Shown here one piece after another: positions 10,235 to 39,360 of a DNA stretch of 60,685 nt (within the stretch, counting starts at the first letter, position 1; every line of letters starts with the position of its first letter). The notes under the pieces are model-generated. The model did no database searches. It was given only the letters and a program-made list of their open reading frames with translations, and had not been told where the DNA came from. This stretch comes from Oopsacas minuta. Its lineage: Eukaryota; Animalia; Porifera. The position numbers were made by a program, and so were the translations under genes. The stretch spans positions 1 to 60,685 of the forward strand of contig JAKMXF010000304.1 in assembly GCA_024704765.1 (NCBI GenBank), in the 5' to 3' direction.

Positions 10235-10267
10235 ATTTCCCCTACTGGAAACGAATAACCCACTGTA
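10235..10267 (-). repeat. Probable 3' TIR of the decayed RAG1-like element (TACAGTG-18 bp-GGGGAAAT on the minus strand)
   Basis: It has the same heptamer-to-GGGGAAAT spacing (18 nt) as the 3' TIR of the intact element, and lies about 0.7 kb downstream of the 1975-2850 ORF once Chapaev3 is removed. Confidence 0.55.
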
Positions 10268-10487
10268 TCATAGTCCGAATTAGAAAAATAAAAGGGGCAC
10301 TCGAAGAAAATTAGCTCTAAATGAGGCGCTGAGTATAAAAAGTTTAGTAATCAGTGACCTATAGAACATACAAGCCTGTATTAGGATTTATGACAATTAT
10401 TTATGTTTGATGAATATCATAAATAATATCGATCAGTATTCTAAGATCAATCACACAAAGGTAATAATGTATTTAATATCATATTTG

Positions 10488-11036: not shown

Positions 11037-12059
11037 TAGGTTAATAAAATTGATTGATTTGCAAATATTACTCTAAACTTTCAAATAAAAAATAGATGTA
11101 AAAGGCAATTCTGGAACTGGAACTATCTGTTAAGGTGGAATCATAACTATGACATAGCGTTCTGAAATATTTCCCGAACATAAATTTGGTTATTTATAGG
11201 TTATAAGTATATTTCCTTATATACAAGTTTAGTTTGCTTGCCGAACGTTCCCTATATGTCATGTGATTTTGTGTTCAGACCTGAACATATATAATGCCAC
11301 AAAAACAAAAAAAGCTCATTTCATTGGATTAGATTCCTTGTATATTTACTATTAATAGGGTAAAGTGTAGAAAAGTTTAACAAACCACCACTGTTATCAC
11401 AATTGAAAAAAGACAGTGGTTTTGAAATTTTAGAGAAAACTCTGTCAAACCCCAAATATTCAATATTTGTGACGTTATAACTTACAAACCTCATGAGCAA
11501 ATGATTTGAAACTTGAACATATATGTTGACTAGTTAGTAGCTACTCACACAGCAATGCTAAGACAAATTTGATTATGTTGGTGATATGGCTAGATGACCT
11601 GCTATGGAATTCTCAAATATATTTTCCTAAGAGAGAGACTCTAAAATGATTTGGCGGAGCTCGCAAATGTATTTACGACACTGCGGCTGGAGATTCTTCC
11701 AGTTTTCAATCAATTCTTAACATACAAACAAAAGGGCTGGGGACATACCTTGGGTGGGCCGAACTCTGGCCCGCGGACCATAGGTTTGGACACCACTGGG
11801 TTATGGGAACACTTATTAGAAATTTTGTATCATGAGCAGTTTAGCACCCTCTGGCCGACATATTGATCTAGTTTAGATATGTTTGGCCATGTTTGGTCTA
11901 GCTGGGTCATATGACCACAGTTTGAGAAATCATTGTATACTTCTTTGGCCATTTTGTAAGACATAACTAATGGAACATACATTTATTGATATATGACTTC
12001 AACGGATTTGAAAATTACATCAGGAATAGTGTTGGAAGGTATTTGACATATATAAGTAC

Positions 12060-12917
12060 CTGTATAGAAGAGTAAACGTTCTTGAATGAAAACCATTTTA
12101 CGGCGTCATCATGCAAATTATCTTGATATACTTCATCTGCCAATAACAATAAACGTTGCTCATTACAGAATTTTAAAATTTCAACTTGCATATGAAAAGG
12201 TAAACATTGACCTGTAGGATTACCAGGATTAATTACTACCATTGCGCGAGGTATTGATTTTCCCTGGTTTAATACGAGAGCTTCCTGAAGTTCATCCATA
12301 CTCAAACCCCAGTCATTATCCTCATCTAAAAAATAGGGAATCGGAACAATACCGAAGTAAGATAAACAAGCAGTATATAAAGGATATTGAGGTATAGGAA
12401 TAAGTATCCCCGAAGGAATATCGTCTTGAACCTTAGCAATACAAGAAATAATGTTGAAGATAATCTTGCTTGCTCCATCGCTTAGAAAAATATTTCTAAA
12501 ATCTGCTTGACAATTATCTCGATATGAAATATAATTTGCCACCTCTCTTCTGACAAATTCGAAACCAAATGAATCTGTATATCCGCCAAAACTGGTAATA
12601 GAGGATATAATAGATTTTGCCCTAATGAGGACATCTTCTGGAAATAGGCTGCAAGCACCGGGTAGGTCAATAATGGGTGGATATGCGCAAAGAGAGATTA
12701 ACTGACGACCAAATGTAATAGGTTTCGAACCCAGATTTTGTGGATTACCTAAATTCAAATAAGTTAATTCATTAAAAGGCCATTTGTGATCAACATCTAA
12801 TTCAAGAGCAATTTCAGAGGCACGAGTTGGGATTAGGCCCCTAACAGCATATTCAACATTCAAAATATGGGGATTAAAATTTAAAGTAGAAAATGGCTTA
12901 GAATTATTAAGAGCCAT
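12060..12917 (-). CDS. GPT: Alanine aminotransferase (PLP-dependent class I), first coding exon
   Basis: Motifs include EYAVRG, NLGNPQ, GGYTDSFG, IFLSDGAS, IPIPQYPLY, VVINPGNPTGQ and LLADEVYQDN. ATG is at 12917 and a GT donor follows ATACAG at 12059. The PLP-lysine exon was not found in the window. Confidence 0.92.
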
Positions 12918-13521
12918 ATAAATAATGCTAGTAGACAAATAAAGATATAGAAAAACACTAATACACTACTATATGAAGGGCGAACAAGGATGATGAGGAA
13001 ATATTTTTTCGAAAGTGTTCATTGAAATAAAGTTTATTTACTATATCGTTCAACGGATTACTATCGCAGGATTGCCTACCTATAAATATAGAAAATAGGG
13101 GAGCTTACTCAATATCTGTGCTGAGTGAGGAGGCAGCAAGTGATACGTAAATTCCTTCAAATCAATAATGGCATTTGCTTTGGCTCAAAAGCTGACCGAA
13201 TCGTTGGCTCACCCTATCTATCCATAATATTAAAACAAAATCAATCTATGTATAATAGGATGCATTCGTTGCCACTTTATTGGAGACAACAGTTGTCTCA
13301 TTATTTTTATGTTATTTACATCCCAAAGAATCATAATGTGCAATTTCAATAGAAATCAACAAGAGTTTAGGCATGCACAATTCAATTATTCCAAAGTACA
13401 GGCTTTGCAATGGGATTTGACCAGATGTTTTCGCACAATTCTCAAAAACTGTAAATCTGATGGGACTAGAAACAATATACCATATATTTGGTTCATTTGG
13501 AGGGGTTTGTTTCTGGTCTAA

Positions 13522-13545
13522 TCTATATTCTCAAATCTCAATTGT

Positions 13546-13580
<35 letters not shown>

Positions 13581-13830
13581 TTGTTTGTTTGTCCTTTGTC
13601 AAATAAAGGATTTACGGTATCCAAATTTGAAATCGTAGTATAACTGAGTTTATCAAGGAAGTAAATAGAAATCGATAAAACTTAACTAAATTTATCGAGT
13701 ATGCTGAGCCTGAATATTGTAAACAACATCAATATTACTAAATCTCAATTGTTGCCTATCTGTTTGTTTGTCCATTGAATATCTCGAGGCGCAATGCACC
13801 GAGTTCATCGCGAAACGACGGGCTCGTACA
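13522..13830 (+). repeat. Family B repeat (Helitron-like 5' TCTATA start with a (TGTC)n/(TTTG)n microsatellite)
   Basis: It begins A|TCTATATTC followed by the microsatellite. Blocks GGATTTACGGTAT, CAAGGAA.GTAAATAGAA and TAAAACTTAACTA recur at about 37700-38040; related blocks occur at about 39410-39530 and, reversed, at about 52100-52370. Confidence 0.55.
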
Positions 13831-14244
13831 CATTTATAGTATAATGATCATCATTTCCTAGATAAAGGAAAAAAAAGGGACTCGCTAATAGAATCCTATT
13901 GGGTAATTCAAAATTAAATGCAAAAATATCTTAAACAGTGCAAACTTAGGTTATCAAAATGCATTACTAATAGACACAAACAACACTCAAATTACCCAAG
14001 TCTAAGGTGAAAACACTCTAGCCCTATAAAAAAGTACACTTTCAGAAACCTTTCCTAAACATGGAAAAATACCATCGATAATATATATGTTGGAATAATC
14101 GAATTGGGCACCCCTAAACCCCTGTTGAATTCCTATGAAATTGTATATTATGAATATTTAGGGTATAAATAACTGAAAAAATGGTGAGCAAAAGTGTTGT
14201 TTCCAATATAAGGGTCAACTGATACACCTTAGTGCATATATATA

Positions 14245-14470
14245 GGTCTGTATGTCCAGAATTGATTGAAGAAATTGGAAGACCCCAAGAGCTGATTTTT
14301 GGCATACAGGCGTATTTTGTGTCAGCATGGACAAGTTTGAGCTTGGACGAAATTCACACCTATGACGAAATTATGACGTCATTGCCACCTTATTGGATTT
14401 TCGAAAATTCACATTATTAACAACTGCTCAGCAAATATACATTGTAGAAATTTGAAAATTAAATATTTCC
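14245..14470 (+). repeat. Family A Helitron-like repeat, partial copy
   Basis: It has the same conserved blocks as 10488-11036. Confidence 0.6.
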
Positions 14471-17400
14471 CAACTATAGGCATAAAAAATGCCTTGTCCG
14501 TATTATTGAAATTTAAGAGATGATACAATTTTCTTACATGACCTATCATTCATGATATGAAATTTTCTGAAATGTGGCATAGTCTAGATTGGATGGTATA
14601 TGTTTCTATTCTTGAAGAGAAACATGACCACAGCAAGTGCTTACTACCGTCTTTGTAATATGAAATGAGCTAGGGGGAATGAAGTGAAGAAAGTCCAGAG
14701 AAGGGGCGAATGTAAAAGTAGGAAGATATATATATACTTATGCTACTATACGCAGAATTTCGAAATAAGGACACCCAACTTGTTTCTTGTTGCACGGGAA
14801 CATGTGACAATACTTCTTATTATAGTAACAGTTGAAGTAATGACGCAATCGTGGGCTTGATGTGTTTTGTTTGATAAAAATGTATAAACTGTATTCATGA
14901 AACAATGTGAATATCCTCGCTATCGTCGTGGAATATAATTACAGTGAACTCCGCTGAATCGGGAAATCCGCTTAATTAATGTATCAACGTTGGTATTTAA
15001 ATATCTAATTACTTTTGAACGAAAACAGTTATCATGATGAAGTGGTCAGATACCTCATTTATCATATTAAATAACATAACTAGGTACTTAGCAACGGAAA
15101 TATAGAATGGAATTCACACATAAAAATTATGTTGCGCATTGAAGCGTATTTAGTAGTTTAGTATGTCAAATATATTACATAATTGAATACCTCTTGAAAA
15201 TTTCCAAGCTATCTGATGCTATCTGTATTTTTGCGGCCTCTCCAATTTAGGAAATAATCGAGTTTTGGAAAAACATTTGTGGAAAATGAAAAAGGATAAA
15301 ATTTGGAAAGTTGGGAGTATTTTCCAAGTATTTACGCTTTTAAACTGAATGAAGAAATGCTTTATTGAGGCTGTGGAAGATGAAATGACTAAAATATAGA
15401 AAATGTATGAAAAGCAGCCAGATTGAATTTGATGAACATTTTTAATTTGCAATTCTACATTTCGCAGGTAAATTCCATGAACTTTGACAAGCAAGTGTAT
15501 GCGCTATAAGAATTTAATCACATTTATTTTTGGATTGCATAGTAAGTAAGTAAGTAATGGTTAACATATTCGAAGTTCAAAAAATCAATTCCATGACAAT
15601 TAATATTTTCCCTATTCCGGGCGCAAACCACTGTGTGAAGCAACTGTAAATTTAAATGCTGTAACTTAGAGGCAAAAAGTCACCCTTTGGTAAGCATTTC
15701 GAAAAATTTATGAGATTACTAAATCCAATATCAAGTTGAGAACACCCTTGTTATTGGAGATAGTACTTCTCAAGTAAAGAAATTATATATGTTACTATCC
15801 TAGAATAATTGAGTTTCTATTGGAATAATATATGCCATCGTTGCCATTGTGGAGTGGAATAATTTTGTGTACGATCAATACAACATGTTATGTTTTAACA
15901 GAGTGCAACGATATTTTGAGAACTGGTTTAGGATAGTGAAGCACAGTACTTACACTTATGAAACAAGAATGAGAGTAAACTGATATCATTAGGTCGATTT
16001 TTGTAACTATAGAGGATAGCATTGCTGCATGTAAATCTGCTTTTATGCAATTTGGAAACAAAAAATTTATAAAGAAAAGAAAAAGCAAGTACAAAATGTA
16101 GAAAAGTGTAAGGAGGTATGGTCTAAACGGAAAAGACCAAACAAAGCTATATAAACCTTCCGAATACAATATTTCAAAGGCATTTGAAGTATTAAATCGA
16201 ATAATTGACCATTAGTTAATCTACAAAAGCCGTAGTAAATACAGAAATAAAAGTACCAGAGGAAGTTCAGAATATTAGTTTACCCTATGAGGAAGTAGAA
16301 ATAAAACCGATTTAGACCATAAAGAATTGGGTGTACTAGATTATACATTTCCTAAATTCTAACCCATTATTTATGAGACGAAATATATTTGTGAAAGGTT
16401 AATTCACTAGTTTATGCTATATATGAAATCCACAAAATTCAAGTAATTTGTAATAGTGTTTACATTATTTCTTATGACAAGTTTGAATGGAGAGAGTTGG
16501 TGTCTTTGATGTACACTACGTCGGCGAATGTATTTCTTAACCAATTTCAATAGTTCCGTGGGCAGTAAATATTTACATATATGTATAAATAAGGTATCTT
16601 GTACAAAGTAAAGATCATCATAGCCCTGAATACTGTCTCTAAATTCATTTCTATGAACGATCTTGAGGAAAATTTCTATAATATGAGAGTGGTATAATAA
16701 TATAGTGTTATTCATCTGTGCTATTACACAAGTAATGTATATCAACTTTTTTGTGTGTTGGTTAACTACAAAGAAGTTCCTAAATTAAAATATTTGTGGA
16801 AACAAGTTGCAATGGGAACAATAACAAATATGAGAATATGACTTCCTATACATACTAATGATCTAAGCAAGTGCTGTATAGTCTTACAAGTATAGTCTGT
16901 ATAATAATTACCATACTAAGCAACTCAAGAAAATTGAGAAAAAACAAAATAAAAATCAAGTAAAATATCATAGAAAGTACTAGCGACCCCTGGTATTTTA
17001 AGGAAATGAATTATAAGATTCGAATTATGGTATCTATAAATTTTGGAGGGGTTCTGAAGAATATTAACTTCAAGAATTAATCTCAAATTTTGAATTCGAA
17101 TTCACCTGTTTATCGAATTTGGAGGTCGTTGCTGGTGATAGTTTTTAGTGTTTCACAAAAATATCGATATTGTATATACATCTCTATCTCAACTATCGAT
17201 TAGCATAAAAATATTTTAAATTCAGTCGGGTTTAGGGTAGAAACATGAGTTTAAACTAACCCTACTTTATGTAGAATATGATTCATCCCCTATCACTCCT
17301 AATCCCTACTTAAAAATTGAATTTCTCTAGCTCCATAAGTTGTTTTTATTTGTTGATGAAAATAATTTACATAAACGTCCATGAGACCAAAGTATGCATA

Positions 17401-19131
17401 GAGATTTCAGAATAGAATTGTGACTTTTAGGCGTAAATTCAAGGGAGTCGTGACTCTAAAATTTTAACCAAAAATTACTAAAAGTAACAGTTTTAAAAAT
17501 GCAAAATTATTTTGTAAACTTCTTTTCTCCACTTTCTAATGATATTACTTTCGTTTAAATCTGATGTGGATAAGTGAGTCAAATTAGAGTCTGAAGTGAC
17601 CCTAGTCAAATAGTCTCTAACCTCTTCAGTTAATTTTAAAATGAAATATTTCAAAAATTAAAAATATTTCTAAAAATATACTTTAAACACAAAATCCACT
17701 AATCCTCAATAGTATGTAGAAGAAATATTGAGAACCCGGTCAAATTCCAGATTATAGTTGACACGTTTTCAAAACCTTAATGCTTATTCATCACACATAT
17801 TTTTACAATTCTGATGACATTTTCGTTATCCACCAACGCTATACATTCGAATAATAACAAGTTTTTTTTCTCTACTATATGGAAAGTCGATCAAAAAATA
17901 CCATTGAAGTGAACACGTTTTTAGAATTCGAATTGGTTGCTAACTCCTTATTCGTCTTTATAATAGCAATCAGCAATATTATTACCCCCAGTCCTGGAAA
18001 GACTTCTACACTATAAGCTCAAATTTTCAAACTGCCGGAACCCGACAACAAAGTTTTGATCATTGAATTCGGATTTATACCTATGGTCCCAATTTATTGT
18101 TTATTGTGTTACTATCATTTATACGCCCTGGTATTGCGATTTAACATTATCTGCGATATATAGAAGAAAGAACACTAATTGTTAGAATAGATCACACAAA
18201 GGGAAATTTGTTCAATAGCAAATTCGTCTGTTACCAAGAAATTTTAAGCAAAACTTGATTAACTATTTGCCCGGACAACACTGTACAAAATGTGACTAGT
18301 ATATAAGTGAATATTGCAAAATACTTCTACATACTGATTACAATATATGCAGTAGGCCATGAAACTATTTATTCCAATAACAACCCCAGCGATTATTCGA
18401 GTAGGGGCTTGTTTTGGGGATGAAATTTTGGTTCCCATTCCATTCCCACATGCTTTCCACGTGAGAATTCCCAAGCCACCCTGTTTGTTTTCAAATCAAT
18501 GCAATTCTTTAGAACGAATATTCGTTGACACAATAATTCATATTGTGTGTTGAACTTATTTTCAAGCAATTTTGAGATTGGCAGTCCACTCCCTTTTTGT
18601 GCAAGGAGCGGAGTTAGGAGCACCCCTCCTTTTTCATGCTAGGAGCGCTGAGCGGGAGTGGCTTCAAAATAAACAGTGCTTAATGCTCTGGTAATATGAA
18701 GGGTGGTCCTTTTAATTACATGCTGAAAACAGCTACTTCTGATAGTAACTGATGTGGGTGGGTAGGTGTCGAGAGTCTAAGGGAATCTCAACTCACTTAG
18801 CAGTGGTTCTGTCAGTTTGGGGGAACAGCACTTTACGGATTGTGCTCTCAAAACTCGGGTAGTACCGACCAAAGGGTGATATAATAAGACAAATATCCTA
18901 AGGATGAAACATCTTACGCGAAAATACGTGAGTAATACGAATCACCTTCATCATATAGTGATTCCTAAATTCATATGGGGATCCAGCCATATTGGATACT
19001 TAGCATGTGAATATCCACTCCATAGTAGTGGTTTCTTATATCAACGGAAACCGTACTTGTAGATATCTTCACTAATCCATAATCCAACTAAAACCAATCT
19101 GATGAAAATTCTATTCCTTAGCTAAAACATA

Positions 19132-19554
19132 ATGGGTCTAAACATTGGTAAAATGATGCAAGATCAATTGAATAAAACTCAAGAGTTCATGATCCAGCAA
19201 GGTCAATTAACAATGGATCGGCAGGGCGTGATGCAGGCAGAGATGTTTCGAAAACAAGCTGCTATAGGTGTTGCCAGAGCACAGGATACAGCTCTGTGGT
19301 TTGGCAGTTTCACACTCTGTCTTGCATTTGGTGCTACTGCTGCATTTGCTAAGACCAAAAATAAGGTGTTTTTTGGACTTCTCCTCCCTACCACTTTTAT
19401 TACCTGCTACTGGATTGATCTCGGATATTTGAATAAGATGAAGAGGATCAGTTCAACTGCTGAAGATTTATTGAAGAATCACAAAACCATCGCTCTACCT
19501 GGTGGCGCTCTAAACTTTAAAGAAATTGAAGCCAATAGATTAGGGAAAAATTGA
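19132..19554 (+). CDS. PLGRKT: Plasminogen receptor (KT)-like membrane protein, 140 aa, intronless
   Basis: It is colinear with PLGRKT/C9orf46: MG..IGK.M..Q.EFM, RQ..MQ.EM..KQ.A..VA, two hydrophobic segments, DLGY, AEDLL, LP.G.L.F..IE. Confidence 0.85.
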   Translation: MGLNIGKMMQDQLNKTQEFMIQQGQLTMDRQGVMQAEMFRKQAAIGVARAQDTALWFGSFTLCLAFGATAAFAKTKNKVFFGLLLPTTFITCYWIDLGYLNKMKRISSTAEDLLKNHKTIALPGGALNFKEIEANRLGKN

Positions 19555-20061
19555 ATATTCCCCTTTTCAAAATGTTAATCGCAAAGTTAACAAATTCTTT
19601 ATATATTATATACTGTAACGTAGGAATTTACATACTATCCGTTATTGAAGAATATCAAGTTTCCGCAAGAGATTCCTCAATTGGGAGCTCACACTACATT
19701 TGTTAGCCGGCTAGGGAAACCTATTTGGTGCGGAAAGAGAAATATAACATCCTGTTATATTATCTATCTCCTAGAATTAAGGGTGCAATAAAGTCAATCA
19801 GCATTTTGATTTAGTGTTATAAAACCTCTGAGCTTCGTTCTACATTTTTTCAAATTCCGATCAGAATTTTAATTGCTGTTGATAGCAATTTGCTAACTTG
19901 TTCCACTTTTGATGTGGCAATGGGGATGTTGGTGCTTCTGGGCTAGGTTTTGAAGACATATTTTTCATGAATTTATCTGAACATCGAATTTATTAATTTC
20001 TGATTTATGTTAAGTTTGGTGCACCTCATTCATTCATTGAGAACAGTAGTGTATATGTATA

Positions 20062-20590
20062 CAGTGAAACCTCGTTTAATGCAGAACAACGGTCTGTCTA
20101 AATTATTTCGCTTTATCCGGAGTAATCAGGGTTGCTAGAAAAGACCACTCTGGAAACAACACCTAGAAAGCCGTTATTCCCACCCTGGAAAAGGCAGCAA
20201 ATTTAGAAAATCACATGATTATATGTATGGCAACATTATCACATGCAAGAGACTGAAAATCTTGAGAAATTATAGTCTTGCTTCATAGATATTTTCCATA
20301 AATCATTTCATATATTTGAAGTAATAACATATGTTATTTTAGCGCATAGTTGTTGTTCCGGTATCTTTCAAGCTCTTTAGAATATTTTTAGGGCATAATT
20401 AATAAGTTATGGAGAGCTAGAAAACAAAGCTGCAAAGACCAGAAAAAGGCGAATTTCCATACCCGTCTTGCATAGAAAGGGAGTTTTTTTCCGAGCACTG
20501 GGCCATTATAGCGAGCTGTTTTTGTGTCTATATTTATTCGTCTTATGGAAACTTATTTATTCCCCTTTCATATTACGAGGTTCCTCTCTA
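20062..20590. mobile_element. Decayed pogo-like MITE
   Basis: The left end is TA|CAGTGAAACCTCG and the right end a degenerate CGAGGTTCCTCT|TA. Confidence 0.4.
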
Positions 20591-21979
20591 TATAATATAC
20601 GTCGATCATTTTCGGCCTTTCACTAAATATGTCATGGTTTGAAGCAATTTAAGGTTTTTCGTTAGTTTTTGGAATTGCCCATTATTTTTCAAAAGATACT
20701 GAAGCGCGTGTCGATTCAAACTTCCTCATCATTCATTAAGATCTTCTAAATAATTCAATGAGAGCTCCGTAAACTATTGTCTTAATATCTGTGAGAAGTA
20801 TGAGAAAATTTCTCAGCAAGGTTTTAGAATTTAGGTGAATATTTGGACTGTGAGTTGATTCAACATATTTACCTATGATGTGGAACAAAAATATTGTGAC
20901 CGACTTCCCTTACCCCAAAGGTTGTGACGCTTCTGGGCAAAGGGTGGGAATGGTTTAAACTTGGTGAGAGCTTTAGCTTCATATACGATTTTTGTCTTTC
21001 TACTTTTAATATGTACACTACATGGACAAAGTATTGAATACATACCCAATTTCCGCATAAATATGCTAAAGTAGGTTTAGTTATGATGCACAGTTAAAGT
21101 GGCGTACGGTGACCAATTTAAGCCTAACATTACGAAAATGCCTCTACTTTATTACACTAATACATTCAAGGACATACACACGAGTTAGTTAATTTGTCAA
21201 GTGAGCGACAATATGGTTAGAGGGAAGTATTTACAGAACGGGCGAGCAAACCGTGTTTTCTTATTTAAATACCTTCATTATTTTCAACATGACATTATGG
21301 AGCTCGTGGATATTATTACGTGGCCATTTTTGGTTAATAAACGTTTTGAGAATAATAACTTTAGGAGTTTGACTATCCCAATTGGTTACATACTAGGTGT
21401 AAATGTTGAACAGAGAATGAATCCAGGTGATAAAATTATATTATTATTCAATAGTTTGGGTAGGCTTAAATTCAAGGAAATACGGTATATCCAAAATATG
21501 AATTTGTTCCCGCGAGTTTGAGGTTGCCAGGCTAATACACTCCACTTGTCTATGATCTCTTGAACTATATTAAACCCCGATGTACACTCAATCTGTCTAG
21601 TATATTGGTAGAATAGGGTATAAACACATTAGGACAAAACGAAAGAAAATGCGCTACTCAGCCATCCTATCTATACAATTACTTCAATACTATGAACCTA
21701 CTTTCATTTTCATTAAGGTTTAGCCACCTACCACTGAACAAAAGCGGGTATTTTCTATTTCACCCCTGTAATTGTGATTCATATCTTCAGAAAAAATCTA
21801 ATTAGTTAGAAAGACGAATAGGTTTATATAAATATAATTATATAGTTATGATTATACTCTAACTTTGCAAATCTCTCTTTTCACATTTCCCTATATTTCT
21901 CTTCGTTAGCTTGGCTGAATATGTTATATTAAAACATTTCGTTGGGACTCAGATTTGGCAACACTACAGGAAATCTTTA

Positions 21980-22330
21980 TGTGGGAGAATGTTTGTATTT
22001 CCTGAATTGAATGAAGAATTTGGAAGACCCCCAGGGATGATCTTTGGCGTAAGGAGTATTTTGGGCCTGGATCGGACAAGTTGAGTCTTGGATGAAAATT
22101 TACATCTATGACGTAATTGGCACCTTTTGTTTATCAAAATCATAGTATTCGCCACTGCTCACCAAATATACATGAAAGATGTAAATTTGCCCCCTAAATA
22201 TGCCAAAGGTCCAGACTCCAGACATCATGATTAGGCCAAATGCAAACTCATGGGATTATTACGTCATCATGACATTACAAAAATTAAAATTTTTCAACGA
22301 GACATTATTTCCAACTATTAGGTGCAATTT
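21980..22330 (+). repeat. Family A Helitron-like repeat, partial copy
   Basis: Shared blocks include GAAGAATTTGGAAGACCCCCAGG, ACTGCTC.CCAAATATAC and GCAAACTCAT..GGGATTATTACGTCATCAT. Confidence 0.6.
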
Positions 22331-22448
22331 ACAATTTGTCCAATTGTCTTGTTTCGAATTCCTGAATTTATGGTATATATCTACCCTTTGAGGGATGAAC
22401 CTGACTGTCAACGTACTATATCATGTGTTACTTAGCACCTTAATTACA

Positions 22449-22554
22449 TGTACATTCACTACACCGTGATCATATTTAAACCATAAAGAATGTACATTCG
22501 CTACACTGGGATCATATTTATCCAATAAATACTTGTACATTTCCCTATACCAGT
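22449..22554. repeat. Minisatellite with a 42-43 bp unit, about 2.5 copies; related copy near 23097-23160
   Basis: The unit TGTACATTC.CTACAC.G.GATCATATTTA.. starts at 22449, 22491 and 22534. Confidence 0.7.
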
Positions 22555-25500
22555 CATTCTCAACAGAGTCCACTTGGCTCTCATGGGGAGGATTATGTTT
22601 AAGGATTATCCACCAGGTCTAATGGGTCACTGACTACTCAACATCGGTTCCATAGTCAATAAGTTTCGACTTGACCGGGTTCAAAAGTTGGACAAATATA
22701 TATATTATGATATCTAACCAATTATGATTGATTAAACATATCCAAACATAGAATTATTCATCGAATATAAAAAAGCGTTAAATAATTATGAATAATAATA
22801 CTTGTTCTGTAACATTCGAATCAGGCCCATGGTTCTCATTGAAGTTGCATAATACGAATCGAAAATAGATTCTAATCTTGGATTTTGGTAAGATAATCAC
22901 TCAATTATTAGAAAACAGTTGTTTGTTTGGTAGACTAACATAAAATTAATCATTACTATTACAAAAATTAAGGTATAATGATGATTCAAAGATAGGGAGC
23001 CATAGAAGAACCTTTGGGTCGCTAGGGGATGAATGCGACGTCGGACGTTAAGAAACACTGCCCTATATTATAGTAATATTTGATCCCATATAATTTTGTA
23101 CATGCACTACACTGGGGCCATATTTAAACCATTTATAATACTTCATTCTCTACACTGGAGTCTTATTAAGGATACTGAAGCTATTGCCATTTGTCTTTAT
23201 CTAAATATACCCAGTAATTGGTAACGTGTGCCATTTTGACTACGGATTGTTAGATGACTTGTGTTGTTTTACAACAGGATTTATAGTTCCACAATTTATT
23301 AAATAGGGAATATTTGAGCAAATAAATGCTTGCATTTAGACACATTCCTGATTGTGTTAACTTATTGGTTGTTAATTTGTTTCTCTTCACATATGTAACA
23401 AATTTATTCGGGAAAAAATGGGCCGTTTCTGCAAAATAGAACTCACATAGAAGTTGTTCTATCGACTAATCTTGTCCAAAATCCACAAATTACTATTAGG
23501 CATATTGTAGGCTATGCCTAGCAGTAAAGGCAACAATAATGGGGACGGGACGCGAATTGTTTAACTGCTGAAGCTACTGTCAAGTTTCTATGATGAAATA
23601 CAATTTTTATACTCAGTTTATTAAACTAGAATTCTTGAAGCAGCTTCAGGCATAATTGTATATATACATGACCTAGAGCAAAACTAAGAAGAAAGGAGTA
23701 GTTTACAAATTTTGCCAACGGGGGTAATTGAACCACGCACCCCAGTGCACTTTTTGGTGGCGGCATCTTTACAATATGTTCCACATAATTACACTAATCT
23801 CACTCAATCGCATACTAATTTATATCGGTTTGAATCATCATACAATATTGTATAACCATTATTCTATAGGAAAGCAGTTGCCAGACGATATAATTTATGA
23901 TATTTGTACAATGAAAAAATATTTTAGATATGAACTCTAATAATCCAAAAGCTAACCATCGGCTGAGCTGAGCTGCTACAAAAGTCAATGTAGTCTTTAA
24001 TTTGAGGCCATTGAACTGTATTCAGTTCATACCAGAATACAATACTTTTGTATGATCACATTGAGAAATTTTTCAAAAGATATCTATACGTGAATCATTT
24101 GAGCACAATGGAGCAGAGTAATCATTATAGAGACGGGTACTTTTCTCAACACACTTAACATACAAAACATCCCAAACTTTACAAGTTTAGTGTACTTAGG
24201 ATATTGGTAGCGGCAGTTGATAATTCTTTTTAGAATGCTGAAAGTAGCGGTGCAAACTCTGGGATATTTCGATGGGTTTCCTTTTACGGGTGTAATTTCT
24301 TTAGGAAAAAATTAAAAAAATTATCAACGCAAAAGAGCGTATGGGTTATGTAATACAATGTTTGTTGTGTAAAAATTGCTATTAACTGACATTTGGGAAA
24401 AATTTTTTAATTTTAAATTTTGAACTGTTCACATCCGAATCGCTTCGGCTTAAAAATCTCAAAAATGTTAACTAGGCTCATTATCTGGCTTGTGAATATT
24501 TATATTACCTCTATTCTATATTTGCGACAATTTCTCAAAACATTACGAACTTCTAACAAACCATTTCTGAGATATGTCCGCTTATATGTGAATATCTGAC
24601 GTTCGTTGAGCATATCCATCTTCATTTTTCATTTTTCATAAATGATCGAACCTCTTACTATACATCATTTCCTCTGTATTATTCATGTACATTATTGTCG
24701 CGTGCTATGTATAGTTATATTAGTACTCACTACTAACATTTAAGACTCTATTATTCGAGTTACGATCCTGAACAATGAACACCTATCCATAATTGGGTGT
24801 ATTAAACATATATCTTTAAATATTGATAGTGTATATGTAACAGTCAATGTGTAAAATCAGTCAATTTACAAATTGACTGATTCACTTAGGCAATTTATAA
24901 ATTGACTAGAATTTTCAGCCAATTTACAAATTGACTGAATCATTGGTCAATTTTTTTGATAGATTGCCTGAAAACATATTACAAATTTAAATCAACAAAG
25001 TAGTGAATAAATGAGAAATCTTGCAATTATTGTTATTCCAAAACATACACGTCTACTCAACTTAAGAATTGAAAATGTATAAGAGAAACCTGACTCAAAG
25101 TAGTGTATCCTCAATAACACATATCAAAGGGAAGCATCTATCGACGTGAAATATTCTGGAGTATAAAAGGCAAGGTATATGAACATCCTCATAACTCTAA
25201 AAGATGTCGGACACTAAGGAACAGTCTTTCCGTGAGGAGATGTTGAAACGAAAAAGCTCCGATGCCAAATCATTATTGATGACCAAACACGAGTATTTTT
25301 TGTTGCTTGAAGAGGTCAAAGTTGCATCTGACACCGCAAAGAAGTCCAACAGGCAGTACTATATCCTTGGCAGGTATGTGAAGAAATAATTATTGGTTCA
25401 ATAATTAAGCTTGAGTCATGGCTGCATTACTTGGATTAAGGTCAAATAAATGTTCTATACAATACCATAATTAGTTCTTTAATTGTATAGAGCCTAAGTA

Positions 25501-26454
25501 CGTACGTTGTTTTAGGATTCCTTGGCTGTACATGGAAAATATGCCAATAATATTGCGGACTACGGTTGTGTACTATGTTGCTGGCATCGATTAAGTGACA
25601 TATTTTATATATTTTGCAGGTACGAAATTCTTCAGTGTGGCGATGTTGAGAAGTTGATTCGAAAGCAAAGTGAAGGCTCCCAAGAAATTATTTACTTTAC
25701 TCACATAGATGATATGTTCGACATCATTAAACGTGCTCATGTTGCATGCGGCCATGGCGGTCGAGACAAGATGACTAAAGCTTTGAACAAATATGCAAAC
25801 ATCGCTCGCGACTCCATTGAGCTCTACAAATCTCTCTGTGTTTAATGTCAACAGAAACGTAAGCGTTCTACCACTAAGGGTGTTGTTGTGAAGCCAATTC
25901 TGCCCAAAGACTTTGGTTCCCGTGCTCAGGTTGACCTCATTAACATGCAGTCTATGTGTAAAGTTTCATATAGCTGGATCATGGTTATCAAGACCACTTA
26001 ACAAAGTATTGTGTATCACGCCTTTGACTTCCAAACGTGCTGCTGAAGTCGCGTGGCAACTGGTTGACATTTTCTTGTTACTAGGCGCCCCTCAAATTCT
26101 CCAGAGTGACAACGGCAGTGAATTTACAGCATCAGTCATCACTGAACTGAATGTTATTTGGCCTGATCTACTTATGGTCCATGGTAAACCTCGCCATCCC
26201 GAAAGCCAGGGATCAGCTGAGAGACTGAATTGTGACGTCAAAGACATACTAACGGCCTGGTTAGGTGACAATGACTCTACAGATTGGCCAACTGAGCTTC
26301 GTTTTGTGCAGTTTCAGAAGAACAGTGGTTACCATTCTGGAATTAAACAATCCCCATTCAAGGCCCTGTTTGGACGTGATGCACAAGTTGGACTACGTTC
26401 AGCATCCCTTTCTAATGAAATCCTAGAACGCCTTGTGTCCGAAGATGACCTAAT

Positions 26455-26490
26455 CACAGTGTGGCAAAATGGCCATAATGGGGAAATAGG
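26455..26490 (+). repeat. 3' TIR of the RAG1-like element: CACAGTG-18 nt-GGGGAAATAGG
   Basis: Read directly as CACAGTG TGGCAAAATGGCCATAAT GGGGAAATAGG. Confidence 0.95.
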
Positions 26491-26760
26491 TAAATGAATC
26501 TGTATTATCGCCACAATTATACTTACATATACTAAATCGACACTGTAGATTTCAAAAATACCAATGATTATTTAGTAGCACGACTATAAACCTAGTTATG
26601 ACGTAATTACTGACATTTTCTAATTTTTAACACTTGTGGTTCATTAGTGAGGATATTATGAAAGTTGATAATACATGCATGTCATGGTCTCTATTCTGCT
26701 ATTTGATAACGTACAATTTAAAGACCCTTAATTATGTATGACTATTGGATATACTTATTA

Positions 26761-28893
26761 TCATAAATCATCTGATAGTATACTATTATATAATATCTCT
26801 TGGAGGCTATTTGCAACGTCTCTTTTCTTCTTTGCGTGCATCAAACGATTCTGTACTAAGATGGGGTCACTACAACATAACAACCTGACTAAAATATCTC
26901 TAACATTATCAGTGAAAGAAGTTTTTCTTGCAAGATTCTCCCGATACCGCCTTACAAATTTATTGCAGGATTCTAAACATTCCTCAGAGAGATTCTGTAA
27001 TCCCTTACCATTATTATAAGCACCTATTAACTGAAACGAATGGGCAAGTAACTTGTGCAAAGATGGAGTGATGCTTGCCCATGGGTACTCAATTAGAATA
27101 AATTCGTACGTTTCTTTGCACAATTCTTGCATTTTGTCACAGTTAATCAAGTCACCACTGTTGAGGAGTCTTAACAAAACAGATAGATTTGTCTGGATCT
27201 TCTCTAATGATATTTTATCTGAAGGATTAATGGAAGAAGTGGCCCACGTCAAAAAGTCTCTCTTATTTAAAAAGCAGTCTCGCGCAATGTTACCAGTGGT
27301 TGAAGTGCCGCCCTGGCTTGAAGGGATATCGACACTGAAATTACATCTTTCCTGGAGTATAGCTCGAACCCGTTTCATGGAAAAATTTACTTTCGAGTTT
27401 GATGGCGCCCATACCTTGTGTCCTGCATCAAGATGGTATATCAACAGCATGAACCACCTGAATACACAAAGGTAAGCATGCAAAGGAGATGCAGCTATAA
27501 TATCGATGTTAGAAGTTGGTTGATGCGTAATACCAACACGTTGATTTGATGGGAGTTTCAAGTAATCTTCTTCATCAACCTCTTCAAAAAGTTGCCGAGC
27601 GTCGCTAATTAGTCTGTTAATAGGGAAACCAGAATGGGCCCATTCTAAGCTTTTAATTTGGCTATCCGTTGCAGTACACAGATGACAAGAAGCCCCACCA
27701 GCTCCATCCAGCAATCCTGCCATCTTGGTATCAAAAAGGGAACGGACTATCTCGACCTGTGCATGGCCTCCAATAAGAGATAACCCATCCTGTATGATAT
27801 GGTCTGTTTGAGGATTGACTATTGTATTCATGATAAGCTTTACACTAGAATAATCTTCTTTCAGAGCTATCAGTGCTACTGGCCTAAAGCAGAACGGAGA
27901 GTTGGGTGAGCTGTTATAGAACACGTCATTTCCAAGTGTGTCTGTAATTGATATTACTTTGAATCCGAACAAAATGAAAGTTTTTGTGCTTAATGCAGAA
28001 TTGTTGCTTTGTTGGTTATAGGTTTGATGACAACCGGAGCCATCCAATCCATCAGATATCTTAATTTTGAGTGGGTAGTGTGAATCAGGAACTGGGTCTA
28101 ATGTTGAAAGCAAGCGTTGAATGGTCAGACTAAGGATGGAATGATAAGAGACGCAAGTCCCAATTGACAATGCTTCGGGGTCTCTGACTATTTCCATTTC
28201 ATTTATTAGGCTTATTTCCCTACGATATTGCGAGACAAGTTTATAGGAAGGAAGCTTAACATCACCTTTGAGAATTCTTTTCAGATTCGTGTATTTACTC
28301 GCCCCAATTTCTAATCTGTCCAATATATAAGCACATTTAGAGATTTGTACTTTGTTCAATACACCGCTAAAAGATCCCTTATCAATTATTTCTCTGCACA
28401 TGTCTGAAGTATCACGGTCATAGGATTTATTTGAGACTAATTCTAAAGCTAGAGCGAGTAGTTGTTTAGGCTCAATCTTTTCTCTCTCTGCTAAAAAGTC
28501 CACATGCTCTAAAAGAACACCAAGTCTCGATCTGGAAGTCTTCATGTGACATTCGAGAATATGCTTCCGGGATTCAGTTACAATCTGTTCTGAAAAGTTT
28601 CGATTTTCAGAATCAGTGACTAAAGAAAATTCAGGATCAAGCGATATTCTCTTTCTTGGATTGGATATTGTTAGATGAGTAGAGTGGAAAATCATATTAT
28701 CCCATGTTTCAAGATCCTTCCTGCGGTAAGCCTCTCTGGATGTTAGAAGTGATTTAAATTTTAAATGAAGAGTAGCAGTTTCTTCTTCGGATAAATGGTT
28801 GTTCTCAATAAGTTTCCTAACAGAGACTGTAACACTTCTTCCATTCGAAATATACAAACTATATGCCTCATTGTTCGTGATTAGTACAGACAT
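26761..28893 (-). CDS. RAG1-like (Transib-family) transposase, intact, 710 aa from ATG 28893
   Basis: Numbered on the 713-aa track ORF: D287 (DGLDGSG), D391 (FDTKM) and E644 (SEECLESCNK..RRYR...ARK) match RAG1 D600/D708/E962. Zn ligands are C406/C409 and H616/H621. PNSPFCFRP matches RAG1 PNSELCCKP, and an NBD-like segment spans residues 110-175. Confidence 0.93.
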   Translation of the reverse strand: MSVLITNNEAYSLYISNGRSVTVSVRKLIENNHLSEEETATLHLKFKSLLTSREAYRRKDLETWDNMIFHSTHLTISNPRKRISLDPEFSLVTDSENRNFSEQIVTESRKHILECHMKTSRSRLGVLLEHVDFLAEREKIEPKQLLALALELVSNKSYDRDTSDMCREIIDKGSFSGVLNKVQISKCAYILDRLEIGASKYTNLKRILKGDVKLPSYKLVSQYRREISLINEMEIVRDPEALSIGTCVSYHSILSLTIQRLLSTLDPVPDSHYPLKIKISDGLDGSGCHQTYNQQSNNSALSTKTFILFGFKVISITDTLGNDVFYNSSPNSPFCFRPVALIALKEDYSSVKLIMNTIVNPQTDHIIQDGLSLIGGHAQVEIVRSLFDTKMAGLLDGAGGASCHLCTATDSQIKSLEWAHSGFPINRLISDARQLFEEVDEEDYLKLPSNQRVGITHQPTSNIDIIAASPLHAYLCVFRWFMLLIYHLDAGHKVWAPSNSKVNFSMKRVRAILQERCNFSVDIPSSQGGTSTTGNIARDCFLNKRDFLTWATSSINPSDKISLEKIQTNLSVLLRLLNSGDLINCDKMQELCKETYEFILIEYPWASITPSLHKLLAHSFQLIGAYNNGKGLQNLSEECLESCNKFVRRYRENLARKTSFTDNVRDILVRLLCCSDPILVQNRLMHAKKKRDVANSLQEILYNSILSDDL

Positions 28894-29539
28894 GATCCGC
28901 AAAAGGGCTACTTTAACATAGAAACATTATGATATATGATTGTAGAGTATTGGAATAACTAATAACCAGCAAAATATAGAATTTTACTGAAAAAATTTAA
29001 AACGTATGAAAAATATATTTTTCGGATTTTTGTCCGGTCCGGACAATGAATGACGTGATAAATTTTTGGGCAGCTTTTGGCAAGCCTGGAAAGTGATTAA
29101 ATAGTTGACTAAATATAGTAACATTACTTATATATTAATAACGTTTTGTCAAATTTTGTCAAACAAGAGATGCTACACTTCAATCAATGAGAAAAAATTC
29201 CAAATTATAACTTTGGGAGGGCCAAACTAGACACCCGGAAAAAAGTACAAATGAATATCTAGACTAACCTATCAATGATTAAATTGTTGTTACAATATAG
29301 ATTTATTATCAGAAGATGTTTTTCACTCTTATATTTAATATTTACATCAAATATGATTACATACATTAGGGCATAGGAATTTGAGGTTTGAAAATATATA
29401 TTTCTATTATTAGAAACACATAACAAAGTTGTGCGTAGTTAGGATTCCTAACTGCTTCTAATGCTGCCAATGATATTTTCGTACTAATTGAACTATGGAG
29501 AATTCGAAAAATGCATTGAAATATGTTTTTTAAAATATG

Positions 29540-29566
29540 CCTATTTCCCCATATTGCCACACTGTG
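29540..29566 (-). repeat. 5' TIR of the RAG1-like element: CACAGTG-9 nt-GGGGAAATAGG
   Basis: The reverse complement reads CACAGTG TGGCAATAT GGGGAAATAGG. Confidence 0.95.
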
Positions 29567-30690
29567 CTAATGGCTGCATATCAGCAATCTGACCCCTCTC
29601 AAGTCTCTCCAGGTAGCCAGACCACAGTTTCTCCAAATCTTCTTACCCCAAGAAGATAAGTCACCTGATCCCTCAGAAGCTACTCCTTCAACGTCTTTAT
29701 CTGCTCCTTCGTCTCAGGTAACTGCTATCCAAATACGGCACGACAACATTCAACTCAACCGCAAGAGAGCAGCTGAAGGACAGATAGCTCAGGTCGAACG
29801 CATGTTGAAACACAGTCGTCTAGAGCAGGTCGCTGAAAACCCTGGAGATAATGTAATTATTCTAATCCCTTTAGTGGATCGCGGTAGAGGAGATCCTCGA
29901 AACATAATGGGTGTAATTCTGGAAAGAAATGAAAATGACATGTACCGTATAGCAGTCCGTACAGGAATCCTGAAAGAATCTTACAGCCGAAATCAATTTG
30001 ATTTGTGTCCCCATCCGCTACACAGTGTGAATGATTTCACCACAGACAAAGAAATAGGCCTACGACAAGCTGTTCAACAAGGTCTAAGTGTGGTGGACAA
30101 GGGTTTGCCAAGTGTAACTGTACACAAAGTGGCAAACAATGCAAATCAAACAAATGTAAAAGTTTCAAGGCTGGACTTAAATGTAATAGCAAGTGTCACG
30201 CGAGCATGATCTGCCCCAACAAGATCTGAATGGGAACGATATATGAACTATTTAGTCAGTATGCTGCAATCACATGCTTTTAATGAATATTGATATCAAT
30301 TAATTAAATTCGTAATATGTTTTCAGTCAATCTGTCAAAAAAACTGATCAATGATTCAGTCAATTTATAAATTGGCTGAAAATTCTAGTCAATTTGTAAA
30401 TTGCCTGAAATTCTAGTCAATTTGTAAATTGCCTAAGTGAATCAGTCAATTTACAAATTGACTGGAAATTTCAGTCAATTTGTAAATTGACTGATTTTAC
30501 ACATTGACTGTAACATATATATATTATAATGTCATATATATATTAGATATGTACAAAGTTGAGCATAACGAATCTCTCGAGTTGTAAGTGTTTATTTTAG
30601 TTATTATCTAAAAATTTGAATCACTTAGATCTGAGTTTTCAGAATCAGTTACCCAATTCTGTAATTCTACTCTCTCTTCACCATCTTCAA

Positions 30691-35501: not shown

Positions 35502-38048
35502 CTTTGTTCAATGTCATAAGTCGAAAAATAGAGTCTCAAATGTTAGTAGTGAGTACTAATATCATTATTCATAGCACAAGGCATTAATGTACATGAATAA
35601 TACAGAGAAAATGATATATAGAAACAGTCTAGATCATTTATGAAAAATTGAAAATCGAGAGGGATATGTTCAACAAACGTCAGATATTCACATATAACCG
35701 GACATATCTCAGAAATGGTTTGTTAGAAGTTCGTAATGTTTTGGGAATTTGTCGCAAATAAAGAATAGAGGTAATATGCATATTCACAAGCCAGATATTG
35801 GGTCTAGTTAACAATTCTAAGATTTTTAAGCCGAAATGATTCTGATATAAACAGGTCAAAATTTCAAATTCCAAAAAACATTCCAGATGTCAGTAGATAA
35901 CAATTTCTTACACAACAAACATTGTATTACATAACCCATACGCTCTTTTGCGTTGATAATTTTTTCGTAAAGATTTTACACGCGTGTTTTGTATTGACTA
36001 TAATCTTTGTCAACACACAAGAAACCTCTTGAATTTTATATCTGTATTAGTCATTATTGCATCCCAAGAAATGGAATTTATGGACATCTTCGAGGTTGAA
36101 ACTACCAGTGCTATTGGACCCAAATTACTCAGGGTCAAAACATTTGGCCGCGCCTGGAAGATTATTTTTGTTAATATGATATCACAGTTGTGTTAGCAGA
36201 TATTGTTGTATAAAAGACCCAACAAAAAATTGTTTTAGCACTTTTTTAGTTGTATTTACAGCAAAAAACTGATTTTGTTGTAATTTGTAGAATCTAAATT
36301 ATCGTTAACGGTTTATCCTTAAGATCCGTTGCATTTAAATTAATTCACGGATTAACGAATAACCAAGTTATCCCTAAATATTTAACAAAATGAACATTTC
36401 AAGATAATTATCCGTACATAGAGCTTAAACGAATAGGTTACAATCCCCAGTATCGGCAATTATATATAATAATGGGAAAAAGTAGCTGTGCTGAAAGGGC
36501 CAAGTGGTGTCAGTATCTCGTAATGACGGTGATGTGATTTGTAATTACATAATTCAGTTGGTCTAAAATGAAATTAAGCCCAATTTTCATTGTATTAATG
36601 TAATTATCAGTTTCAATTTATTCTTCATCATCAATTTTATTCACTAGAGTAATTGCGCACTTTATGTCTTTATCGCATTTTTACCTGGCCGACTATACTT
36701 TAGTATAGTGTGAGAACTGTTCAAACTTTTGTCAGGCCTCTAGCAAAAAATAATGAAAGGAATGGTTCCAAAATTTCACACCTTTCGAGAGTGAAATTCT
36801 ACAACTTCTTACTATCCTATAATTTTGTTGGTTATAGATTTTTGCTCAGAGTAAATGAAATTTATTCATCATATAGCACTATTGTATCGGTAATAAGTCT
36901 ATTGTTCTTAGATGTTAAATATTTATTAGTTAAACAATACGTACTTCTAGTGCTATATAATATGGATTCATTGGATATCAAATTTAACGATGAATGAAAT
37001 ATTTTTCAAATTAACCACGGATAATTTAAAAGATATGTATATCCTCTAATATAACCTTTAATATTCGTAGAAGATTGTTTCATACAGCAAAAGGGGGTAA
37101 TTCAATACGCTGATTCCCAATTTGACACTTGAATTTATACCGATCAGATCTTCTACAGTATTCCCTTCTATCAATATTATTTAGTCGACTGATAATTATT
37201 GCAAAAATTGAACATTATATGGGCTGGATAATTATAGTAAATTTGTACATATATTGTTTGATGGAATTGATATCCTTCGCTCCGCTCAGAGAATATCAAA
37301 TTACAACCTGTGCCGACAGCTATGTCTATTAATTAAATGTTTAAAAATGGCACTATTAATTGGAGGCACTATGTGTAATAAGATTAAACCTAACCTCTCA
37401 TGGTGCCTCCAATTATTAGTGCCACTTTTAAAACATTTATTAATGGATGAAGCTGTCGGCACAGGCTGTAATTGTACATGTGTTTCTAACAGCCCTGGCG
37501 GAAGCTCGAGAAAGGTGGGCCGGCCTTGAATTGTGATCATCACAGAGTAAATTAAATTAATTTGAGGGGATTAAGAACTCCTTAAATATACATTACGAGG
37601 CAACTCCCATAGAGATTACATTTCTTCTCAATGTAAATCAAAGTTGAGCATAAGTTATGGCAGTTAAACTAAGTAATCAACTAGATATATCTAATTCTAT
37701 AATTTATATATTAAAACCCCAATTTTGTCTGTTTGTGGAATTGTTTGTTTGTTGTCAAGGAATGGATTTACGGTATTTAATTTTGAAATAGTCGCATAAT
37801 TATGTATTATTGTGTTTTTCAAGGAAAGTAAATAGAACTCTAATAAAACTTAACTAGATATATCAAACATGCTGAATCTGATTTTTACACTTTGGGATGA
37901 ATGATAGGTAAATTACTTTTGTTTTATAAAATCCAAGTATAAAGTAAAAATATTATCCAAATCTCGAATATACGTATAGGCTTGCTCAAAACGGCTACTA
38001 GGGATAATTAAATACGCTGAATCCGAATTTCGTATTTTCTTATATGTA

Positions 38049-39360
38049 CAGGGTGCGTTTTAAGTTCTGTCCCATCTTTATGTTTTATTGTATTATCTAT
38101 ATTCTAAGCATATCCTTAATACTACTATGTTGATTCTTTTACTATATTGTTTAGCTAGCACCTATACCTATTATACAATACACCATTCTCACGTATTAGT
38201 ATTTTCATTTGATGGAACACGAAAGGTCAGCTATTATTGAGTTAGCTAAAAATGGCAAGACTCAGAAAGAAATTTTGAAGTTGCTCAATATTCCCGCTAA
38301 TAGACGTAAGTTTGTCTATCGTACGATTCGGAGGTACAACGAGACTGGGGAAGTTTGTGACAAAGCAAGAAGTGGTCGTCCCCTTCAGTAACGACTCCAG
38401 CACTCCAAAAGTTGGTGCGGGAACGTATCCGTAGGAACCCACGGCGTTCTATGAGGAAAATGGCTCAGGAACTCAAAGTATCAGAGTCTTCAGTACGGAA
38501 AATTGTGAAAGTGAACTTAGGCATGCGTTCATTCAGAAGAAAGAGAGTTCACTTCCTAATTGAGCAAGTAAAGGTCAAGAGGCTTCAAAGATGTAAAGGA
38601 CAATTACGTAGGCACGTAAATCATGATATTAAAAAAATTGTATTCTCCGACGAAAAGATTTTCACCATTGAGGAAGCTTTGAACCCTCAAAACGACAGGA
38701 TTATATCACACAAGTCATCTACTATTGATCCAGATCTGAAGTACGTTCCTCGAGTCCAAAAACCACTTTCAGTAATGGTTTGGGCTGGAATATCGGCTGT
38801 TGGTCGGACGCCACTAATTTTTGTGCCAGCAGGCGTAAAATAAACTCCACAACTTATCGTGACTTAATTTTAGAGCCCATAGTGAAGAACCTTAGCCAAA
38901 CCATGTTTAATGGTGGGTCATTTGTATTTCAACAAGACGGAGCACCAGCTCACACATCAAATGTTACCCAAACCTGGCTTCAGAGCAATATTCCATGTTT
39001 TATTGAGAAAGAGCAATGGCCTCCATATAGCCCAGACCTGAACCCAATGGACTATTCGGTATGGTCCATTCTCGAAAGCAGAGTCTGTGCTAAATCTCAC
39101 AAGAGTATAGACTCTTTGAAGCGAAAATTGCGAGAAGAGTGGGAGAAAATACCCCAAGATGTACTCCGTGCTGCAGTTGAGGCCCTACCTGGCAGGATAT
39201 CAAGTGTCATTCATGACAAGGGAGGTTATATTGAGTAATCAGTGCGATTATGTAATTGTATTGATCATAGTAAACTGGTATAAAAGTTTAAATAGTAAAA
39301 GATCTATTGTAGTAAAGTTATGAGGATTTGACTATGGGACAGAACTTAAAACGCACCCTG
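38049..39360 (+). mobile_element. maT (DD37D) element, 1312 bp; transposase 38212-39238 with two frameshifts
   Basis: It has perfect 27-bp TIRs CAGGGTGCGTTTTAAGTTCTGTCCCAT and a TA TSD. Motifs are VFSDEKIF, VMVWAGIS and QQDGAPAH-x-SPDLNPMD (D37D). Confidence 0.95.

Follow-up and report, generated by a model that had tools for sequence, protein, structure and literature searches.

The 60,685-bp stretch of contig JAKMXF010000304.1 (assembly GCA_024704765.1 of the glass sponge Oopsacas minuta), hereafter called the window, contains at positions 26455–29566 an element of 3112 bp, very probably a Transib DNA transposon that is autonomous; its multi-copy family is very young and likely still mobile. 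The element comprises a single RAG1-core-like open reading frame (ORF) with a DDE active site, enclosed in terminal inverted repeats with CACNNTG ends and flanked by the two 5-bp copies of a duplicated target site (target-site duplication, TSD), and lacks a RAG2-like gene. These are the features by which the Transib superfamily has been defined since 2005, namely, as a RAG2-independent RAG1 relative with a 5-bp TSD and CACNNTG ends (Kapitonov and Jurka 2005, PMC1131882), and a single gene, a 5-bp duplication and a CACNNTG heptamer in the absence of RAG2L are traits of the superfamily as a whole (PMC1131882; PMC7204232).

The left end of the element begins with the heptamer CACAGTG (26455–26461), and the right end is closed by its reverse complement CACTGTG (29560–29566); the terminal arms of 18 nt (26455–26472 and 29549–29566) are 94% complementary. 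The TSD CTAAT is present on both sides, the left copy (26450–26454) being a perfect 5-bp match to the right copy (29567–29571). The single-exon transposase gene is located on the minus strand at 26761–28893 (ATG at 28893, stop codon at 26761; 2133 nt, 710 aa and a stop) and is uninterrupted, while the 713-aa version in the ORF list is counted from an upstream TTG. The non-coding parts of the element are only 673 bp upstream and 306 bp downstream of the ORF, and therefore a RAG2-like gene cannot fit in it. Inspection of the ORFs of the element revealed no RAG2-like (kelch/PHD) gene inside the terminal repeats and no further ORF of at least 80 aa, except for antisense ORFs inside the transposase gene.

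Alignment and structural modelling showed that the predicted transposase folds like the RAG1 core, with an RNase-H-like DDE active site and a zinc site of the C2H2 type. In the sequence search of solved structures, the catalytic residues D284, D388 and E641 (codons at 28042–28044, 27730–27732 and 26971–26973, respectively, minus strand) were aligned to D125, D224 and E435 of HzTransib, the residue numbering being that of bioRxiv 10.64898/2026.08.26.747230. The zinc ligands C403, C406, H613 and H618 (27685–27687, 27676–27678, 27055–27057 and 27040–27042, respectively, minus strand) were invariant or near-invariant among 44 homologues. The AlphaFold2 model of the full-length protein had a pLDDT of 90.1. 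A Pfam scan of the transposase yielded no family at an E-value of 0.01 or better, and the precomputed match to PF26100 (RAG1_RNase_H) was weak. The N-terminal helical domain (residues 1–72; 28678–28893, minus strand) was confidently folded in the model and was followed by a disordered linker (residues 74–106). Since residues 1–100 contain no cysteine, this domain is not a zinc finger; an Atlas search with residues 1–72 returned nothing above noise and no convincing relative.

A placement with Transib is favoured by the ranking of scores and by structure. In a single-sequence search of solved structures, HzTransib was the best match (6pqn; 96.7 bits, E-value = 1.2 × 10−26), amphioxus BbRAG1L received 22.6 bits (E-value = 3 × 10−4), and RAG1 had no match at an E-value of 0.01 or better. 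The profile search based on the 44 homologues gave E-values of 1.1 × 10−82, 5.4 × 10−60 and about 2 × 10−39 for HzTransib, BbRAG1L and RAG1, respectively. The top structural match was 6pqx, a hairpin-forming complex of HzTransib (Z = 34.2, root-mean-square deviation (rmsd) 2.7 Å, 468 residues, 23% identity), with model residues 179–710 aligned to HzTransib residues 21–500 up to the extreme C-terminus, while RAG1 (Z about 28–33) and BbRAG1L (Z = 28.5) ranked below it. An exhaustive phmmer search revealed 2274 relatives, and the full-length ones outside the sponge group were 26–34% identical to the transposase; word-indexed homologue searches, both with the single sequence and with the profile, returned sponge-type relatives only. 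The closest ESM Atlas clusters were those of arthropod and cnidarian Transib-like proteins.

HzTransib of Helicoverpa zea (PDB 6PQN, 6PQR, 6PQU, 6PQX, 6PQY, 6PR5) is the studied member of the superfamily, with both its biochemistry and its structure characterised (bioRxiv 10.64898/2026.08.26.747230; bioRxiv 10.1101/2023.08.20.553239). The sponge element has in common with the superfamily the lone transposase gene, the 5-bp duplication, the CACNNTG heptamers and the DDE and C2H2 core. Although HzTransib is the best match by both sequence and structure, its identity with the sponge protein is only 21–23%, and the latter has about 180 additional N-terminal residues, which include the helical domain 1–72 and a domain similar to the nonamer-binding domain (NBD) of RAG1; no NBD equivalent exists in the solved HzTransib chain, whose alignment starts with its residue 21 opposite model residue 179. 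Nozomi and related Drosophila Transibs are insect elements that are 42.8% identical to HzTransib (bioRxiv 10.64898/2026.08.26.747230). The element of O. minuta differs from other Transibs in that it falls into a sponge-specific clade and has a high copy number.

Most of what an earlier reading of these letters without database searches (the sequence-only reading) had described was borne out: an intact single-gene RAG1-like transposon with exact heptamers like those of recombination signal sequences (RSSs) was recovered in the CACAGTG termini and the 710-aa ORF, the perfect TSD in the CTAAT copies on both sides, and the full DDE triad with zinc ligands in the alignment to HzTransib and the 44 homologues. 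The flanks (306 and 673 bp) were indeed too short for RAG2L, and the presumed invertebrate origin agrees with the glass sponge host.

Copies of the family and recent transposition

The transposase of the window was identical letter for letter to an annotated O. minuta protein, and 33 annotated proteins were found in its 90%-identity cluster. Nine full-length loci (L001–L009, L005 being the copy in the window), all belonging to one assembly, were fetched. The ORF was intact in all of them, with five copies encoding an identical 710-aa protein and the other four carrying one or two amino-acid changes. An end-to-end alignment was possible for eight of the nine copies (3111–3112 bp), which had an identity of 99.6–99.9% (3–13 pairwise differences per 3112 positions); their 26 variable sites were nearly all singletons, which corresponded to a star-like pattern. 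Perfect and distinct 5-bp TSDs were found at eight of the nine loci (AAGTA, CTTTA, CATTA, ATTAG, TAGAG, GGCCG, TGTGG and CTTGG). The identity between copies ended precisely at the termini, the flanks were unrelated, and the neighbouring genes were different (protein kinase C, glutamine synthetase, Ras, THAP and others). Near-identical copies with their own TSDs in unrelated flanks point to a recent burst of true transposition; the family has lately spread to many sites, creating 5-bp duplications. The number of intact copies, nine or more, is unusual against the published statement that autonomous Transibs are usually present in one or few copies per genome (PMC4411706).

The read data were used in addition to the assembled loci. 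Runs X1–X3, from the same sample, were taken as DNA on the basis of flat depth across genic and non-genic sequence (about 40-fold in X1), and run X4 was taken as RNA on the basis of depth confined to an aminotransferase exon. In X1, the left end of the element was joined to at least 11 different flanks (loose ends), and the summed depth over the element was about 9,000–26,000 (~17,000) versus about 40 for single-copy DNA. In the same-sample DNA runs, this summed depth amounted to hundreds of times the single-copy level, a value inflated by overlapping unitigs. An estimate of hundreds of copies from depth was rejected on account of this inflation and of the ceiling set by the RepeatMasker table of the O. 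minuta genome paper, in which Mirage, P-element and Transib pooled occupy 748 kb of the assembly. Copies and fragments of the family number from tens to a few hundred, as an order of magnitude only. In addition, an X1 contig carried the site without the element, as flank-CTAAT-flank (joint 26449→29567, with five letters fitting both sides), and so bears out both the insertion and its 5-bp duplication. Relatives of the element with 90–99% likeness, together with the empty host site, were found in runs X5, X6 and X8, which represent three other organisms.

Judging from these sequences, the family is a good candidate for a naturally active Transib. The earlier suggestion that the element is possibly still active is in this respect plausible, given nine near-identical intact copies, eight of which have their own perfect TSD. 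In the compact 61-Mb genome of O. minuta, the family is likely to be causing insertional mutations at present.

NBD-like domain and asymmetric ends

Residues of about 106–178 (28360–28578, minus strand) form a predicted three-helix domain similar to the NBD of RAG1, as judged by profile and model matches to 3GNA and other RAG1 NBDs. The alignments with RAG1 extend to model residue 105, opposite residue 390 of mouse RAG1, and thus include the nonamer-binding domain. For the profile of residues 100–182 and their homologues (A2), the best match among solved structures was the RAG1 NBD 3GNA (E-value = 4.5 × 10−7), aligned over residues 389–457 of mouse RAG1. When the domain was modelled alone (pLDDT 87.6), the top 13 matches among solved structures were all RAG1 NBDs (rmsd 2.1 Å), with weak Foldseek E-values (0.6–4), the domain being small. 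Profile and model together showed the predicted N-terminal domain of the transposase to be homologous to the RAG1 nonamer-binding domain. The GRPR/K motif is absent from this domain, which reads TESRK at the corresponding place. The C-terminal CxxCGxxGH knuckle is missing in the family of the window as well, while it is present in P0002, P0003, P0004 and P0011 of the sponge clade and in many distant Transibs.

The two ends of the element differ in the distance between the heptamer and a 13-nt subterminal box. The 3′ terminus, on the stop-codon side, is the long-spacer end (26455–26490, plus strand) and consists of the heptamer (26455–26461), the 16-nt spacer TGGCAAAATGGCCATA (26462–26477) and the box ATGGGGAAATAGG (26478–26490); the same layout was observed in other sponge Transib families. 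The 5′ terminus, on the ATG side, is the short-spacer end (29540–29566, minus strand), with the heptamer at 29560–29566, a 7-nt spacer at 29553–29559 and the 13-nt box at 29540–29552, and reads CACAGTG TGGCAAT ATGGGGAAATAGG on the minus strand. The heptamer and the box are thus separated by 7 nt (5′ end) and by 16 nt (3′ end). No additional ends of this family were found elsewhere in the window, where matches to the terminus or box with two mismatches were at chance level. It should be noted that the minus-strand segment 10235–10267, whose reverse complement reads TACAGTG-18 nt-GGGGAAAT, has the long-spacer layout with T replacing the first C of the heptamer, and could represent either the degraded 3′ end of some related family or a chance occurrence.

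The 7/16 layout with CACAGTG ends was also found in four other sponge families (L010 to L014), the proteins of which are about 40–46% identical. In all five families, the box begins at nucleotide 15 when counted from the 5′ end and at nucleotide 24 when counted from the 3′ end; hence, the second box stands at two distances about one helical turn apart. The box sequences of the five families are related yet different, and the long spacer has a recurring GGCCA-like motif. The robust quantity here is the 9-nt shift of the box, while labels such as "9/18" or "12/21" depend on the chosen box start. Loci L010 (ERZ25071281), L013 (ERZ25069837) and L014 (ERZ25072730) are intact related Transibs of 712, 712 and 684 aa, with perfect 5-bp TSDs (GTCAG, GGTAT and AGGTT, respectively), and their hosts are presumably other sponges.

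An NBD and asymmetric ends are not new in principle, having previously been reported for Transibs. Conserved NBR motifs were described in Transib transposases by Kapitonov and Jurka (2005), and some Transib families are reported with ends that are 12-like on the 5′ side and 23-like on the 3′ side (PMC1131882); according to Martin et al. (bioRxiv 10.1101/2023.08.20.553239), asymmetric ends, the CCGHC tail and a GRPR/K NBD are each known among Transibs. In comparison with 12/23-like Transib ends, the box of the sponge element is offset by 9 nt (7/16) rather than 11, and equating the A/T core of the box with the nonamer would make the ends about 12/21.

By homology with HzTransib and RAG, a transposase dimer would bind both ends of the element, synapsing one 5′ and one 3′ end. 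The core would recognise the CACAGTG heptamer, and an NBD-like dimer would recognise the 13-nt subterminal box located 7 nt (5′) or 16 nt (3′) from it. With the box at two distances read by one such dimer, a productive synapse would need unlike ends, which would be an analogue of the 12/23 rule. On the same basis, nicking at the heptamer border would be followed by hairpin formation on the flanking DNA, and the excised element would be strand-transferred with a 5-bp stagger, all steps proceeding without a RAG2-like partner. We put forward tentatively, and as rather less than an even chance, that a naturally active Transib of one of the earliest-branching animal phyla enforces the pairing of unlike ends by an NBD dimer without RAG2, the GRPR/K motif and the CCGHC tail. 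If true, the 12/23 logic would predate the RAGL lineage and would have been present in RAG2-less transposons, and the dependence on the NBD following knuckle loss, proposed for vertebrate RAG1, would have arisen independently in a sponge Transib clade, other families of which retain the knuckle.

Alternative readings and novelty

The RAGL transposons (ProtoRAG/BbRAG1L-RAG2L, PDB 6B40; hemichordate RAGL-A) have in common with the sponge element the RAG1-like core fold, CAC-type termini and the 5-bp duplication, and PflRAGL-A shares with it an NBD and ends of unequal length. The sponge element differs from them by the absence of a RAG2L gene, of the Cys-rich N-terminal region, of the CCGHC tail and of the GRPR/K motif, as well as by a much weaker score (22.6 bits versus 96.7 for HzTransib). 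Jawed-vertebrate RAG1 and its RSSs share with the sponge element the CACAGTG consensus heptamer, the DDE and zinc ligands, the NBD homology and an asymmetric second box. Meanwhile, the sponge element is mobile and not a domesticated gene, its dependence on RAG2 is not expected, and its protein identity with RAG1 is 16–18%; its box ATGGGGAAATAGG differs from the ACAAAAACC nonamer, and the difference in spacing is 9 nt rather than 11.

The presence of an NBD-like domain, missing from the solved HzTransib, together with RAG1 structural alignments that span model residues 105–687 and a C-terminal CCGHC zinc knuckle that is absent as in jawed-vertebrate RAG1, would agree with an origin from a RAGL-type (RAG1L-RAG2L) transposon that dropped RAG2L and is nearer to the RAG lineage than to Transib. 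Such an origin is considered very unlikely, since HzTransib stood far above BbRAG1L and RAG1 in sequence scores, the transposase has no Cys-rich N-terminal region, and its C-terminal tail was aligned with HzTransib up to the last residue. In addition, the NBD, the asymmetric ends and the CCGHC knuckle have all been reported among Transibs (bioRxiv 10.1101/2023.08.20.553239; PMC1131882), and sister families within the same sponge clade retain the knuckle. For the near-identical copies, the possibility was considered that they result from assembly duplication, haplotigs or segmental duplication and not from transposition, all nine having come from a single assembly; this is extremely improbable, because copy identity stops exactly at the element termini, each locus has unrelated flanks with different neighbouring genes and a separate 5-bp duplication, and the unassembled DNA data of the same sample join the left end to many different flanks. 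A more serious alternative, although still the less likely one, is that the family was amplified recently and is now silenced or inactive, its copies being intact through youth and not through current function. Damage is already visible in the heptamer of L003, mutated to CGCAGTG, and in the imperfect TSD of L007, whereas the ORFs of all nine copies are intact and variants seem sparser within the coding sequence (12 sites in 2133 bp) than outside it (14 sites in 979 bp), a difference that is not significant with such small numbers.

In the maximum-likelihood tree, which covered database proteins only, 11 sponge-type sequences (five from O. minuta and six from ENA assemblies) formed one clade (SH-aLRT 100%), and the placement of this clade relative to Transib, RAG1L and RAG1 is judged by scores and structure. 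Two observations limit the reading of the element as a probably mobile Transib. The empty-site contig had mismatches to the window at two positions (26411 and 26415), with a depth about four times the single-copy level; its interpretation as an empty allele was rejected in favour of paralogous copies of the host repeat. The RNA run X4 contained 67% of the sampled words of the ORF, a result that carry-over of genomic DNA from a multi-copy element could equally produce.

A single-gene RAG2-independent relative of RAG1 is a Transib by definition and not a new class of recombinase. Accordingly, the proposal of the sequence-only reading that the element is a candidate new recombinase or transposase was not supported, as it matches the Transib definition (PMC1131882) and is nearest to HzTransib, and the designation "programmable-end recombinase" found no support in the data. 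That reading had named two outcomes that would speak against it: a placement within Transib was in substance what was obtained, while the second, an absence of other copies, was clearly contradicted by the nine loci. Among the searchable papers, none linking Transib with Oopsacas was found; mentions of Transib together with Porifera or sponges were incidental as far as titles, abstracts and term counts indicate, and in a term search of the O. minuta genome paper with its supplements, "Transib" was absent from the main text and occurred once, in a pooled RepeatMasker class. The family is apparently undescribed in sponges, while the kind of element is known. The present data extend well-documented intact Transibs to Porifera and provide a candidate for a second, NBD-bearing and biochemically tractable model Transib beside HzTransib. 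A young multi-copy Transib with an NBD homologue and asymmetric ends would make the origin of the 12/23 rule testable in a RAG2-free enzyme.

Surroundings of the element in the window

The Transib insertion cut an integrase-like ORF of another repeat (25913–26454, resuming at 29572, plus strand; weak Pfam match to rve, E-value = 0.0094) about 30 codons ahead of its stop codon. Reads from the same sample, and also from three other organisms, contained uninterrupted copies of this host repeat. The Transib lies inside a unit of about 5.7 kb (24832–30519), which carries the interrupted integrase-like ORF and is bounded by inverted-repeat arms of 100–190 nt (24832–24990 and 30304–30519) built from TCAGTCAATTTGTAAATTGACTGA-like palindromic motifs. 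We take the interrupted ORF to resemble GIN1/Ginger-type integrases, as a lead only. The 5.7-kb unit is, in turn, nested in a larger inverted-repeat pair of about 460–650 nt (24315–24775 and 35504–35965).

The sequence-only reading had described every other transposase in the window as decayed, which was roughly correct for a Transib fragment, two DDE_3 fragments and the interrupted integrase-like ORF. The Transib fragment (1997–2814, plus strand) is the decayed C-terminal part of a second, diverged Transib-like transposase, which shares 28–38% identity with the sponge families across some 280 aa and contains at least one frame change. The DDE_3 (Tc1/mariner-type) transposase fragments are located at 38780–39238 (plus strand) and 50902–51693 (minus strand).

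An aminotransferase class I/II ORF was identified at 12003–13004 on the minus strand (Pfam E-value = 4.8 × 10−23). Its depth in the RNA run X4 was 12,000–49,000 versus about 0–10 around it, and the ORF probably belongs to a gene with very high expression, or else shares sequence with an abundant transcript. The segments 13673–13839 and 14341–14507 are small high-copy repeats, since their depth in the DNA runs was 30–90 times the single-copy level.

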